In this document: positions 44,546 through 52,182 of the stretch, one piece after another
How positions within the stretch are numbered: the stretch's first letter is position 1
How the letters are laid out: every line of letters starts with the position of its first letter
DNA from: Macrostomum lignano
Lineage: Eukaryota
Direction of reading: 5' to 3'
Assembly (NCBI GenBank): GCA_002269645.1
Contig: NIVC01000137.1
Location: 124,001-188,000, forward strand
DNA: 64,000 bases
Notes under the pieces: model-generated
Databases searched by the model: none
What the model saw: only the letters and a program-made list of their open reading frames with translations
Told to the model about the DNA's origin: nothing
Made by a program: the position numbers and the translations under genes

Positions 44546-47500
44546 ATGAACAGCGATGTCCATGAAGACTCAACCAGAAGCAGAAATCAATATGATTGGG
44601 ACGAAATTCTGCGGCTACTCAAAGAAAACAATTTCCAGTCGGCAAACGAGAAACTCGACCAGATTCCCGATGACACTCTCAGCGAACTGTTAGCATCGGA
44701 CAATCGGACAACCCTGACAGCCGCTCACAATGCCGCCATGAGCGAGGCCGGCGCACAGACGCTGCTGCTGTTCGTCAGAAAAGTCGGTCCAATTTGCTTA
44801 AACCGAGCGGCAGGTGAAGATCGGACCACACCGCTACAGTTGGCCTGCCAAATCATGAGCGGAGACACAATTGACAAGCTCGTGTCCTCATTGAGACGCG
44901 ATGCCAAGTTAATTGAATCGGCATTCCAGACAGCCGACGCTCATCAGCACACGGCTCTACACTACGCGGCGCAGAACCTCAAGCACGAGGATTGTTTCTT
45001 CAGTCTAGTTCGAAGCTTAGGCAGCAGCGGCCCGCATCTGCACAGAGGCAATAGAGAAGGCATGACGCCAGTAATGATAGCCTTCGATCAGCAGAGCAAA
45101 GAGGCTTTAAACAAGCTAATTTCCCGTACTCCACTAGAAGATACGTGTTTCACTGACGCGGACCGGAACGGCAATACAGCAGTGCACTATGCGGCACTTC
45201 GTCATCCGAGCTGCTTGCTGACGCTGGTCGGGCAGCTTGGTCCTGACTGCCTGGCCGCCAAGAATGCGTGCAACGTGACGCCTCTTCAGCTGACCATGAC
45301 CAGCATCTCGCCCGACGCCGTCAAGGCCATTCTTCAATTGATCGAGCTGGCCGACCCAAAGAGCTGCATCCTGGTTCCTAACCAGTTCGGCGATACGGTT
45401 GTACATTTTGCAGCACGCGACAGGGGCCAAGCTGAAGCGCTTGACAAGCTAGTTAAAAAACTTGGCCTCGAGTGCTTAAGCATGCCCAACCAGCAGATGC
45501 GATCGCCTTTGCACTATGCGTGCGCCGCTCAAAAAGCCGCCACAGTTGCGGCCCTTGCCAAAGTGAAGGGCGCTAAGAAATTATATCTTAATTTGTCAGA
45601 TCAAAACGGACACAAGCCTCTGCACTACGCGGCTAGGAAGGAGGAAAGAAGCGCCAGAGCGACAAACCAGCCTCCCGACGTGACTCTGGCCAGACTAATT
45701 GACATATTCGGTCCCAAGTGCGTCCGAGTCAAAGACGACGAAGGCAACACGCCGCTGCACATAGCCTGCGGCAACCTCAGTCCGGCAGCCATTGAAGAGC
45801 TGACAAAAAGACTTGACAGTACCCCGGACTGGAGGGACTGGTTCACCGAGGGTGACGAGAATGGAACAAGTGCAGTTCATTACGCTGCGTGCAGTTCATC
45901 GCATCCGGGTTCTCTGCTGAAGCTTGTGGACATCCTTGGACCAGACTGTCTCTCCAAGGAAAATGATGAAGGCAAAACGCCGCTACACCTGGCTTGTGCC
46001 AATCAAAACTTTGAAACGGTTCGAGACCTGCTCGACAACGACGACAAAGTCAAACTATCACTACCAAAGAGCCTGTCAAACAACCCTAAAGAACAAATTA
46101 TCCAGCAAAAGATAAGAAAAACTGACCACAATGGCAACAATGCGGCCCACTATGCTGCTCTGAATAGAAAGCACGCCAACTTTCTGAACAAACTGGTGCA
46201 CACATTCGAGTTGTCGTGCCTGTGCGATAGAAACAAGGATGGCAAAACGCCGCTGCACATCGCTTTTTGCACTCATACGGCCGATATCGTGGCACCGCTG
46301 GTTGAGATCGCGATGAACCTGACTATGCCAATTACGGACGAGCAGAAGGAGGTAAAACTCGAGGCCGAATCAGACGCCGTGCATCAGTGCAGAGAATGTT
46401 CGACCCACACTGGCAACTGTCTGACCTGCCCCGACAATGATGGCAACTCAGTGATTCATTATGCCGCTGGAAGTTCCAGCTTCGCGGACATCTTGCTGAA
46501 TCTGTGCGAGCACTTGGGCTCAGAAATCCTGCTCAATGCAAATAGTTCCGGCATAACACCCCTGCACCTTGCTGTCAAGTACAGCATTTGCGAGCCCGAG
46601 CAAGTTTCTAGGCTACGGACCATTCTCAAGGATGACTTTGAAAAGCAACTCGAACTCGAGGACAAATCAAGTCGAAGTGTTCTATTTTATGCCTGTCTGG
46701 GCCACAACTACAACCTGCTATCCTCAATAAATCCGAAGCACAAAGCCCTTCGCGGCACCGATGAAAACGGAAACACACTGCTTCACGCCCTGTTCCTGGC
46801 CAAGTGGTACATGCTTGGCGAAGCTCAGGTGCCGCGCTTCCTGGACGCAATGTCGCTGCTGCTACAGGCTGGCGTTGACCCACAGGAGGAGAACGACTGC
46901 AAACAGAACTGCCTGCATGCCACGGAGCTGTACGGCTCCAGCCTGAAAGCGGTGCTGACGGCGGCTGCTTCGACTGGCAGAGATAACATTAAAAAGCACA
47001 TGAAGAGCATGCTTCTCAGCTCGGAAGGTGTTCACGCAGTGCATGTGTTCTTTGGTCGCTACCGTGTCAGTAACTTTCTTGAGCAACTCTCCGAACTTGC
47101 AGGCGTCAGCGCCCAATCGCTAATTACTCTGACAGTGAGAAAGGGCCACGCCAAAGGGGCCACGTGCTTGCACTTTGCCTGCGAGTTTGGCAACCAGGAG
47201 AACATCGAGTACTTACTATTGCATCGTCAGAAGCTGTCCTCTAAGACTCAAAGTGGTCAATCGTGCGTAGACTACGCCTTTGACAAGGACAAGCTTGACC
47301 GGCTGCTCAGCGTGGCGAGGATGACAGCGGAGAGGCAGCACAGCAGCAATAGGGGCGCGAAAAAGTGGACTGAGAGAATCGTGCAGACCATTCTGCCGCT
47401 TATTGATCCGCCCAAGCTGGCATTGAAGCTCCCGGATCAAAACAGGGCTGGAAAGTTGATCAAGTCAATTTCGGATCAGTCGGTTCGTTCCAGCACCGAA

Positions 47501-50500: not shown

Positions 50501-52182
50501 GGGCTCCATGCTGGAAGCGATGCAGGACGCCCTGCAGCTGGAGAGAGACGTCAACCAGAGCCTGCTGGACCTGCACAAGGTTGCATCGAAGCACGAGGAT
50601 GCGCACCTCACCGACTATCTGGAGGGCGAGTTCCTCACCGAGCAGGTGGATGCTATCGAGAAGATCTCAGGTTACATCACGCAGCTCAAGAGAGTCGGCA
50701 CTGGACTGGGAGAGTACATCTTCGACCACGAGGCTTTCAGTTGAACAGGAGCTTCAATGCGTTCTGCAACTCAATTAAGACTCGCCTAAGACTAAACAGT
50801 AAAACTGATTTATAATTTGTCAGTATAAACAATAAGCGCTTTCACGGCAGTAAAATCATGTAGTTATTGCTACTCATATCTGTGATTCATGTCTTTGATC
50901 AATCGTTTCTTTTATGGCACATAAAAATCAAATACACGCAAACATAATATGCCATGTTTTATTTATTCAGAATGGTCTCGAAATATTTGCTATGATTACC
51001 ATACATCATTGTAAATTCTAAATTGCAATTTAAAGGTTTTAAAATTCGCTAACTTGCCTACTGAAATGCATGAAGTAGCATTGGTGTGTTTTCGAATATT
51101 ATTTTGCTGTTTCATGGGTGGCCATTAAGGGGGTACACGCTCGCAGTGTAGGAGGTACTGCTCAAGACAGTCGTCTGCGCAGAGAGAGGGGGCAGGAGAG
51201 TGACTGAGCTCAACATTGCCAACTCTTGGACGTGACATCCATTGGCCTAAGACACAGGGGCGCCCACCAAGAGACAGGGGCGCCCACCAAGAGACAGGGG
51301 CGCCCACCAAGAGACAGGGGCGCCCACCAAGAGACAGGGGCGCCCACCAAGACACAGGGGCGCCCACCAAGACACAGGGGCACCCACCAAGACACAGGGG
51401 CGCCCACCAAGACACAGGGGCGCCCACCAAGAGACAGGGGCACCCACCAAGACACAGGGGCGCCCACCAAGACACAGGGGCGCCCACCAAGAGACAGGGG
51501 CGCCCTCCAAAAGACAGGGGCGCCCACCAAGAGACAGGGGCGCCTACCAAGAGACAGGGGCACCCACCAAGAGACAGGGGCGCCTACCAAGAGACAGGGG
51601 CGCCTACCAAGAGACAGTGGCGCATACCAAGAGACACGGGGGTCCACTCAAAAGACAGTGTCGCAGGGTTGGAGCATTGTTGAGGATACTACAGCAGGGG
51701 GCTTGGGGTACTGTAGTATCAAGAGTTCGTGGCTATAGCTAACCAATACAACACATGAGAATCAACGATCTGTCTAATCTTGAACATCAGTTACAATCCA
51801 GCAACAATCCTAAACTGTCAATCATTCCCTCACGCAGCCCTGGTACCGGAACGTGAGCGCCTACCCGGCAGAGTACGTGGACTTCCTAAAATTCCAAGCG
51901 GTCCAGTTCAGGCACCACAGGCCGGGCAAGCTGCAACAGGAGGTGGGGAAAAATCGCGGCGAGATCGACGCGTTGAAGGCTCACACTGAGAACGCGCTGA
52001 ACACAGTGTACAGAGGGCTGGACGAGACTGTGCTGGACTTGGACGACCGGCTGGAACGATTGGAGTCCGTGGCATCTCGGCAGAGACAGCGACTCAGGCA
52101 GTTGAACAAGAAGATGGATCAGCTGCTGGAAGCTGCCGCTGGTCCCGCGGCACCGGAGGCAGTGAAGGCCGAGGGTATTTAG
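44546..52182 (+). CDS. Ankyrin-repeat TRP cation channel with TRPM-like pore/TRP-box region. Exons 44546-49285 and 51838-52182 (about 1694 aa)
   Basis: About 20 ankyrin repeats (GNTAVHYAA and GKTPLHLAC types), six TM segments, S6 VNIVMLNLLIALF and TRP region WRQTRFQMLREYQAISTLPPPL. The donor CAG|GTGAGT at 49285/6 and acceptor CACGCAG| at 51837 are both phase 0 and add PWYRNVSAYPAEYVDFLKFQ and a coiled coil. A likely 5'UTR intron is at 44455-44539. Confidence 0.88.
49428..49715 (+). mobile_element. tRNA-derived SINE with CORE-like segment, in the TRP intron
   Basis: Box A-like TAGTGGTTAGAGCG and box B GGTTCGATTC are followed by TGTGCCCTTGAGAGCGAGACACTTAGCTCTCTG, which resembles the CORE-SINE/MIR central motif. 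There is no acceptor stem. Confidence 0.7.
50119..50126 (+). promoter_or_regulatory. Putative TATA box of the ferritin gene
   Basis: TATAAATA lies 110 nt upstream of the ferritin ATG. Confidence 0.55.
50229..50744 (+). CDS. Ferritin (H-type/soma ferritin), intronless, nested in the TRP intron
   Basis: 171 aa: [73 protein letters not shown]. Ferroxidase residues equivalent to E27, Y34, E61, E62, H65, E107 and Q141 are all present. Confidence 0.97.
   Translation: [171 protein letters not shown]
51250..51640. repeat. 20-bp minisatellite (GGGCGCCCACCAAGAGACAG)n in the TRP intron
   Basis: About 19 tandem units. Confidence 0.95.

Follow-up and report, generated by a model that had tools for sequence, protein, structure and literature searches.

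Can a channel of the TRPM type carry a long N-terminal array of ankyrin repeats? TRPM is usually described as a group 1 family of transient receptor potential (TRP) channels without canonical N-terminal ankyrin repeats, and TRPS channels are likewise without them. The question is raised by a gene of the free-living flatworm Macrostomum lignano that lies at positions 44546-52182, on the forward strand, of a 64,000-nucleotide stretch of contig NIVC01000137.1 (assembly GCA_002269645.1, positions 124,001 to 188,000; hereafter "the window," in whose coordinates nucleotide positions are given unless another contig is named). An earlier note, made from the letters of this DNA, read the gene as a chimeric channel of a possibly undescribed lineage, in which about 20 ankyrin repeats had replaced most of the melastatin homology region (MHR) of a TRPM-like channel. 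We propose that the gene codes for a subunit of a cation channel, tetrameric and of the "TRPM-like" group of flatworms, within which it would belong to a separate, fast-evolving, long-ankyrin subfamily with a large expansion in M. lignano. We assign this reading a probability of about 0.72.

Is the joined gene real? A single uninterrupted open reading frame (ORF) of 1596 codons at 44546-49336 on the forward strand holds the ankyrin array, a linker, and the channel, and an ORF of such length with the matches described below is far beyond chance. The first coding exon ends at a canonical, phase 0 donor (CCACAG/GTGAGT at 49285/49286), and the second begins at a canonical acceptor (ccctcacgcag/CCC at 51837/51838) that is in frame with an ORF ending at 52182. 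The spliced product of 1694 amino acids (aa) matches the public protein PAA89802.1 (P0002 in our set) at every residue. The public annotation of this gene, BOX15_Mlig018559g1, has the same span and describes a hypothetical protein, with no functional name. Over a compared length of 27.6 kb, the window agrees with the assembly at 100% identity. The joining of ankyrin repeats and channel in one gene is confirmed, and the motifs that the earlier note had quoted from the pre-S1 segment, S5, S6, and the TRP region are all found at their places in the sequence. From the N terminus to the C terminus, the protein consists of an ankyrin solenoid, an MHR3/4-like linker, a pre-S1 segment, the membrane helices S1 to S6, a TRP helix, a post-TRP motif, and a coiled coil. 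The features of the gene are as follows.

44546..49285, forward strand: coding exon 1 (aa 1-1580), start codon to splice donor, with the ankyrin array, linker, channel, and TRP region.
44720..47338, forward strand: ankyrin-repeat solenoid of about 22 repeats (aa ~59-931), from Pfam, 15 TPLH-type motifs, an AlphaFold2 model, and Foldseek.
47576..48160, forward strand: diverged MHR3/4-like helical linker (aa ~1011-1205, boundaries approximate), from hhalign, AlphaFold2, and Foldseek.
48179..48262, forward strand: pre-S1 segment IIELVERLDLGDIYSTDCISMFAKQEWN (aa 1212-1239), from the sequence, with helices at AlphaFold2 model residues 332-358.
48299..49174, forward strand: channel module (aa 1252-1543), from Pfam Ion_trans, phmmer against the PDB, AlphaFold2, Foldseek, and residue conservation.
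49286..51837, forward strand: intron of 2552 bp, from the splice sites, with a ferritin gene and a 20-bp tandem repeat inside.
51838..52182, forward strand: coding exon 2 (aa 1581-1694 and the stop codon), from the acceptor, the in-frame ORF, and a motif conserved in paralogs.
52009..52137, forward strand: coiled coil (aa ~1638-1680), from a heptad register of about 43 residues.

To which TRP family does the channel belong? In a phmmer search of the PDB, the part of the protein from pre-S1 to the TRP region matched NvTRPM2 of Nematostella (6co7) best, at 78 bits, and TRPM3, TRPM1, TRPM2, TRPM4, TRPM7, and TRPM8 at 45 to 63 bits. The channel domain of NompC reached only 32 bits, and TRPA1 matched via its ankyrin repeats only (dTRPA1, 7ykr, over query aa 208-597). 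The AlphaFold2 model of aa 881-1580 (predicted local distance difference test [pLDDT], 74.5; predicted template modeling score [pTM], 0.64) consists of a helical linker, a small beta element, pre-S1 helices, six membrane helices, a pore helix, and a long S6-TRP helix. The best 50 Foldseek matches of this model in the PDB are all TRPM structures (TRPM4, TRPM3, TRPM5, TRPM8, and TRPM2), with no TRPA structure among them, and their alignments span 620 to 850 columns (about 620 for TRPM4), so that both the MHR3/4 layer and the membrane domain are covered. Sequence comparison and predicted fold both place the channel nearest to TRPM, rather than to TRPN, TRPA, or TRPC, as the earlier note had supposed for the channel module.

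In the secondary structure of the AlphaFold2 model, S1 spans aa 1252-1275, S2 aa 1285-1307, S3 aa 1331-1356, S4 aa 1360-1385, the S4-S5 linker with S5 aa 1392-1428, the pore helix aa 1444-1460, and S6 with the TRP helix aa 1485-1543; the Ion_trans match found by Pfam covers aa 1326-1523. S5 closes with NLLFP (aa 1426-1430), VNIVMLNLLIALF lies within S6 (aa 1503-1515), and in the TRP region WRQTRFQMLREYQAISTLPPPL (aa 1530-1551) LPPP begins 17 residues past the tryptophan. The protein resembles canonical TRPM channels in its best sequence and fold matches from pre-S1 to TRP, in the NLLIA gate region of S6, in the W...EY...LPPP pattern of its TRP region, and in having a C-terminal coiled coil. 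The likeness extends to the calcium site. Across paralogs that are only 34 to 48% identical, five residues that we take to be the calcium-binding positions of the TRPM2, TRPM4, TRPM5, and TRPM8 structures are conserved: E1301 (17 of 17 sequences) and D/E1304 (16 of 17) in S2, N1333 and D1336 (16 of 16 each) in S3, and E1540 (15 of 16) in the TRP helix. Residue R1380 of S4, the gate residues N1509 and I1512 of S6, and W1530 of the TRP region are also conserved among the paralogs.

What precedes this channel? Pfam detects Ank families in 8 stretches of the window protein (Ank_2, E = 1.6e-53), the array holds 15 strict TPLH-type motifs, and an AlphaFold2 model of aa 1-1000 (mean pLDDT, 83.1) has 22 consecutive helix-pair units at aa ~59-931, so the estimate of about 20 ankyrin repeats was correct. 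The best Foldseek matches of the modeled array are the 24-repeat ankyrin-1 and ankyrin-B (AnkB), NOMPC, latrotoxins, and Drosophila TRPA1 (dTRPA1). The final two repeats (KGATCLHFACE..., from aa 870) are strongly conserved across the subfamily. In the same window protein, Pfam gives no match to SLOG/MHR1-2 (LSDAT_euk) at E ≤ 0.1 and none to PF25508 ("TRPM2-like domain"), TRPM_tetra, or NUDIX. Likewise, SLOG (at a cutoff of E ≤ 0.05), PF25508, and TRPM_tetra were found in 0 of 18 sequences, namely the window segment aa 881-1580 and 17 paralogs. The domain scan that the earlier note had proposed returns Ank and Ion_trans and not SLOG/MHR, and its view that ankyrins stand in place of most of the MHR is borne out for SLOG/MHR1-2, where a long solenoid is found instead, with a diverged MHR3/4-like linker kept.

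The last exon completes the protein. It encodes the conserved motif PWYRNVSAYPAEYVDFLKFQ, followed by LKAHTEN and then by the coiled coil, in whose heptad register 12 of 14 a/d positions are hydrophobic. Pfam coiled-coil matches in this exon are weak and all below the cutoff, and there is no TRPM_tetra match. In the paralogs, the motif, of the form W(Y/W)..YP.EY..FL.FQ, and the downstream coiled coil are kept. The last exon is real and does add a coiled coil, as had been claimed.

Is such an architecture new? TRPM_MCLZ of Schistosoma mansoni (Smp_333650) is the target of meclonazepam, and ankyrin-bearing TRPM-like channels of flatworms have been published since 2023 (PMC10788528, PMC11731825). 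TRPM_MCLZ is without an N-terminal MHR1/2 or SLOG domain (PMC11731825), and its clade, which has 63 orthologs in parasitic flatworms, has been termed "TRPM-like" (PMC12861061). Expressed in HEK293 cells, the channel gives calcium signals and single-channel currents and is gated via a pocket in S1-S4 (PMC10788528). The suggestion of an undescribed lineage consequently stands only in part. The design in which ankyrins replace SLOG on a TRPM-like channel is known (PMC10788528, PMC11731825, PMC12861061), and this refutes the earlier note in part on its own terms, under which an already named family would count against it. Literature searches, which included Macrostomum combined with TRP, returned no paper describing a long-ankyrin, Pfam-MHR-negative subfamily or its Macrostomum expansion, and this subfamily, much duplicated in M. 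lignano, appears to be undescribed so far.

In the window protein as in TRPM_MCLZ, ankyrin repeats stand at the N terminus instead of SLOG/MHR1-2; a linker resembling MHR3/4, S1-S6 of the TRPM type, and a TRP helix follow, and there is no C-terminal enzyme domain. Both proteins are found in flatworms. The two differ in several respects. The window gene encodes about 22 repeats, whereas TRPM_MCLZ-type proteins, in which the repeats were located with consensus-seeded jackhmmer, have about 6. PF25508 is found by Pfam in several TRPM_MCLZ-type proteins and in none of the 18 scanned subfamily sequences. The exon plans differ as well: one exon runs from the ATG to the TRP region of the window gene and is followed by a short last exon, whereas in TRPM_MCLZ, a gene of three exons, the channel lies entirely in exon 3.

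Independently of the membrane region, the cytoplasmic part supports a link of the subfamily to the TRPM_MCLZ-type group. In hhalign comparisons, the subfamily linker, which contains the subfamily motif ILPDLIITRQLDLIPSCL (aa 1097-1114), aligns with the MHR3/4 region of TRPM_MCLZ-type proteins (probability, 95.9%; E = 5e-9), and the MHR3/4 region of the TRPM_MCLZ-type group aligns with that of canonical TRPM (probability, 99.5%; E = 9e-23). The putative homology of the linker to canonical MHR3/4 is transitive, by way of the TRPM_MCLZ-type intermediate profile. The last 650 residues before S1 are colinear with the whole N terminus of TRPM_MCLZ-type proteins (probability, 99.6%; E = 6.6e-24, a score that the ankyrin repeats inflate), and the alignment contains a QFD(L/V)IP motif common to the two.

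To place the subfamily among flatworm channels, we consider first the proteins that score just below it. Among 34 long proteins of this next tier, PF25508 is present in 26, SLOG in 19, and ankyrin repeats in 10. The ankyrin-bearing ones come from Schistocephalus, Dicrocoelium, Opisthorchis, and M. lignano and have about 100 to 230 aa of repeats, followed by PF25508 or an MHR3/4-like region and then by the channel. The Dicrocoelium protein (P0055) bears the pocket signature published for TRPM_MCLZ (S1 HxxxH, S2 YxxxE, and S4 R..Y; PMC12861061), in which the S4 tyrosine is expected for Plagiorchiida (PMC12861061). The Opisthorchis viverrini gene model P0028/P0169 has two successive channel modules, translated one after the other, in agreement with the published duplicated terminal exon 3a/3b of opisthorchiid TRPM_MCLZ (PMC12861061). 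P0028 reached 151 bits and was rejected as a member of the subfamily: its score is inflated by the fused duplicated channel exon, and it is a TRPM_MCLZ ortholog.

In a neighbor-joining tree built from 314 columns of the S1-TRP region in 72 sequences, with 100 bootstraps, the window subfamily forms a clade with 93% support, which rises to 99% when a divergent M. lignano sequence (P0032) is added. The TRPM_MCLZ-type group has 77% support and contains an M. lignano subclade of its own at 100%. The split between the subfamily, P0032, and the TRPM_MCLZ group on one side and all SLOG/MHR TRPM-type sequences on the other is supported at 98%. Judged by these sequence comparisons, the window gene is not an ortholog of TRPM_MCLZ and is a member of a separate, fast-evolving paralogous subfamily.

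How large is this subfamily? An exhaustive search of representative sequences returned about 30 clusters (at 50% identity) scoring at least 100 bits, with 37 to 53% identity and with many members of 1200 to 2170 aa. Below them is a gap in score, with the next matches at no more than 84 bits and 22 to 32% identity. The full-length cluster members scanned by Pfam have Ank and Ion_trans (P0008 only weakly), and the number of ankyrin repeats per member is roughly 10 to 26, versus some 6 in proteins of the TRPM_MCLZ type. Almost all of the named members belong to M. lignano, where they lie on many different contigs.

The exception, P0013, is encoded at a locus (L002; GCA_036350755.1, JAZBNS010000602.1, 5106 bp) whose contig is binned as the genome of a "Kangiellaceae bacterium." In this assembly, which is unrelated to that of M. 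lignano, ankyrin repeats and channel lie in one ORF of 1537 codons. CAG/GTAAGT ends the ORF at the position homologous to that of the window gene; a 74-bp GT-AG intron comes next, and then a last exon reading ..WWRNADMDQYNEEYKDFLKYQAEILRKCRPKL..LKAHTEN. Because the locus holds a spliced, animal-type gene with the same exon plan as the window gene, it is eukaryotic contamination of a bacterial genome bin. The intron position is the same in the window gene, in L002, and in the M. lignano paralog P0001.

Several public models of the paralogs are irregular. Tandem, near-identical P0001 paralogs that start at the MHR3/4-like linker are found on M. lignano contig NIVC01000217.1 (locus L001) at positions 2477-4795 and 10001-12604 of that locus, and one of the two continues into a GKGRHR-type repeat in place of the usual last exon. 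The P0009 model (M. lignano, 1988 aa) ends in the EF-hand and SOAR domains of STIM1, which is either an annotation error or an unexpected channel-STIM fusion. The P0005 model holds two partial channel copies, and the P0005, P0009, and P0017 models appear to be fused or truncated.

A number of observations weigh against the placement that we prefer. The selectivity filter of the window protein (F1461-G-Y-F-E1465) and the pattern of the subfamily, F-(G/T)-x-F-(D/E), depart from the TRPM consensus Y/F-G-E/Q. Direct comparison by hhalign of the subfamily linker profile with canonical TRPM MHR3/4 is not significant. The S1 HxxxH pair that is diagnostic of TRPM_MCLZ is absent from the window gene, which has KIHTVSF in S1 and FRSIS in S4. 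In the membrane region, the subfamily has 21.9% identity to the TRPM_MCLZ group (hhalign score, 298) and is about as distant from canonical TRPM, at 21.0% (score, 309), whereas the TRPM_MCLZ group is nearer to canonical TRPM (25.5%; score, 479) than to the subfamily. The neighbor-joining tree is unrooted and distance-based and has no TRPC, TRPN, TRPA, or TRPV outgroup. Because the subfamily is a long branch whose membrane region is equidistant from both groups, the grouping in the tree may be in part an artifact, and the 98% split could partly reflect long-branch attraction. Finally, in the 22.6 kb examined around the L001 copies of P0001, no ankyrin coding sequence was detectable; these copies may be N-terminally truncated channel genes and, if so, are no evidence against the model of the window gene.

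The protein differs from canonical TRPM channels in having about 22 ankyrin repeats where these have SLOG/MHR1-2, in its F-G-Y-F-E filter, in an MHR3/4 region that is recognizable only via an intermediate profile, and in giving no TRPM_tetra match. With TRPN channels such as NompC (5vkq) it shares a very long N-terminal ankyrin solenoid on a six-helix TRP channel; unlike it, NompC has 29 repeats and neither an MHR-like linker nor a TRPM-type coiled coil. The TRPS channels (ced-11-like) are, like the subfamily, divergent relatives of TRPM in invertebrates, although they are linked to SLOG and Nudix domains and free of ankyrin repeats (PMC7306681), the reverse of the window protein.

Which alternatives fit these observations? 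The one that survives best, though we consider it improbable, is that of an ancient, independent TRP lineage. The subfamily, alone or together with the TRPM_MCLZ group, would have branched off before the ancestor of TRPM and TRPS gained SLOG and would have kept the ancestral ankyrin N terminus. Himmel et al. inferred in 2020 a loss of ankyrin repeats that preceded the divergence of TRPM and TRPS (PMC7306681). The 98% split from all SLOG-bearing sequences, the equal distance of the membrane region from TRPM_MCLZ-type and canonical TRPM channels, and the undetectability of SLOG and PF25508 in the 18 scanned sequences are consistent with such an origin. However, the named members of both ankyrin-bearing groups are all from flatworms, so that losses in every other phylum would be required. 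Moreover, the TRPM_MCLZ group has a clear MHR3/4 region of the canonical type and is nearer to canonical TRPM, which rapid divergence explains better, and the tree that gives the 98% split has no outgroup.

Slightly less probable still, in our estimate, is that the subfamily is a distinct lineage at the level of a TRP family and no offshoot of TRPM_MCLZ. An ankyrin spring on the scale of that of NompC would then be combined with a TRPM-type pore that bears the calcium site, in a tethered mechanosensory or otherwise force-gated channel that would have diversified into about 30 sensors in Macrostomum, and the combination would be either a relic of the TRPM ancestor from before SLOG or an independent reinvention of the NompC design.

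It is quite unlikely that the window gene is a decaying or nonfunctional duplicate in a recently polyploid, repeat-rich genome. The very large family, the truncated paralogs without ankyrin repeats, and the retroelements nearby would fit that explanation. Against it, the reading frame is unbroken for all 1694 codons, both splice sites are preserved, and the residues of the pore, gate, calcium site, and TRP region are kept across the paralogs, a conservation that, at 34 to 48% identity, indicates purifying selection.

We give very little credence to an artifact of the gene model or assembly, in which an ankyrin gene and a truncated TRPM gene were misjoined or the last exon was misattached across the ferritin gene. 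A complete ferritin gene does lie between the two exons, several public models of paralogs are visibly fused or truncated (P0005, P0009 with its STIM domains, and P0017), and the public model derives from the assembly to which the window belongs, so that the two are not independent. Misassembly or fusion is nevertheless very unlikely as the source of the joining, because ankyrin array, linker, and channel share one uninterrupted 4.8-kb ORF in one exon, because the same contiguity is seen in many paralogs on other contigs and in the unrelated assembly of L002, and because the last exon has canonical, in-phase splice sites and a motif and intron position that are conserved. Equally implausible is a channel of the NompC/TRPN or TRPA type with a merely TRPM-looking pore, for although in fold the array, with its 22 or so repeats, is similar to NOMPC and dTRPA1 and NompC is the top match of the whole protein in the PDB, the NompC score stems from the ankyrin repeats (the channel gives 32 bits versus 78 for TRPM2), the TRPA1 match is likewise confined to the repeats, the best 50 Foldseek matches of linker and channel are all TRPM, and calcium-site residues of the TRPM style and a C-terminal coiled coil are present.

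How might a TRPM-like flatworm channel with a lengthened ankyrin array work? On the reading that we prefer, the array of the window gene would have lengthened into a solenoid of some 22 repeats, and the MHR3/4 linker of the subfamily would have diverged past detection by Pfam. The tetramer would be held together by the membrane domain and the C-terminal coiled coil, and cations would be conducted through a pore with the F-G/T-x-F-D/E filter. Opening or tuning could be brought about by intracellular calcium, by a small ligand in the S1-S4 cavity, or by both, as in TRPM_MCLZ, TRPM_PZQ, and TRPM8. Ligands that use that cavity are meclonazepam for TRPM_MCLZ, praziquantel for TRPM_PZQ, and cooling agents for TRPM8 (PMC10788528, PMC12861061). 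Because the TRPM calcium-site residues are conserved, we consider it likely that the protein functions as a calcium- or ligand-modulated cation channel. The ankyrin solenoid may serve either as a platform for docking proteins or as a tether like that of NompC. The NompC-like tethered gating or TRPA-like ligand sensing that the earlier note had considered is speculative. The large number of paralogs suggests sensory diversification.

The surroundings of the gene contain several other elements. Inside the intron, on the same strand, is an intact, intronless ferritin gene at 50229-50744 (171 aa; Pfam Ferritin, E = 1e-37), with a TATA-like element about 100 bp upstream (~50115-50125); the public record has it as a separate, nested gene. 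An Rfam scan of the window gave no matches, including no iron-responsive element near the ferritin gene. The intron also contains, at 51249-51658, 20.5 copies of the 20-bp tandem repeat AAGAGACAGGGGCGCCCACC (92% matches), which has long spurious ORFs in several frames, and a 46-bp repeat at 52173-52300 starts just where the channel gene reaches its stop codon. On the reverse strand, at 22292-25024 and 32767-35898, are two paralogous single-exon ORFs of 910 and 1043 aa, each with a weak LRAT-like N-terminal region, Cys-rich stretches, long low-complexity repeats (NASK, QHEQDV, and PGEEPK), and a hydrophobic, Cys-rich C terminus; the Pfam LRAT match of the second copy is below threshold. Exons of a ubiquitin-activating enzyme E1 (ThiF and E1_FCCH domains) lie at 1006-5457 on the reverse strand. 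Retroelement remains at 37249-42194 comprise, on the forward strand, an RVT_1 reverse transcriptase and an integrase-like ORF, split by a GC-rich coding repeat at ~39000-40400, and, on the reverse strand at 41002-42194, a reverse transcriptase fragment of the non-LTR (long terminal repeat) type. Tandem and microsatellite arrays at 20345-21430, 30152-30805, 58700-59030, and 61989-62880 give rise to repetitive pseudo-ORFs (SIYLSIYL..., AAFPASAAAAGSRQLSQPPLQLLAQGSF...), and at ~62900-63260 an ankyrin-like exon fragment, KEAMTPLHKAAIYGNLEAI, belongs to another gene.

What does the gene mean for the TRPM family? The flatworm TRPM_MCLZ, an anthelmintic target, already breaks the rule that TRPM channels are free of ankyrin repeats. 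Besides channels of the TRPM_MCLZ type, the free-living M. lignano, a species that is tractable by transgenesis, carries another set of TRPM-like channels with ankyrin repeats; this set is much larger and more divergent, and its arrays match those of NompC and ankyrin in length. If they are functional, these channels would be a natural experiment on a long ankyrin solenoid joined to a TRPM pore, would extend the repertoire around a validated drug-target clade, and would be relevant to the question of an ancestral or reacquired origin of the ankyrin repeats in the TRPM lineage.

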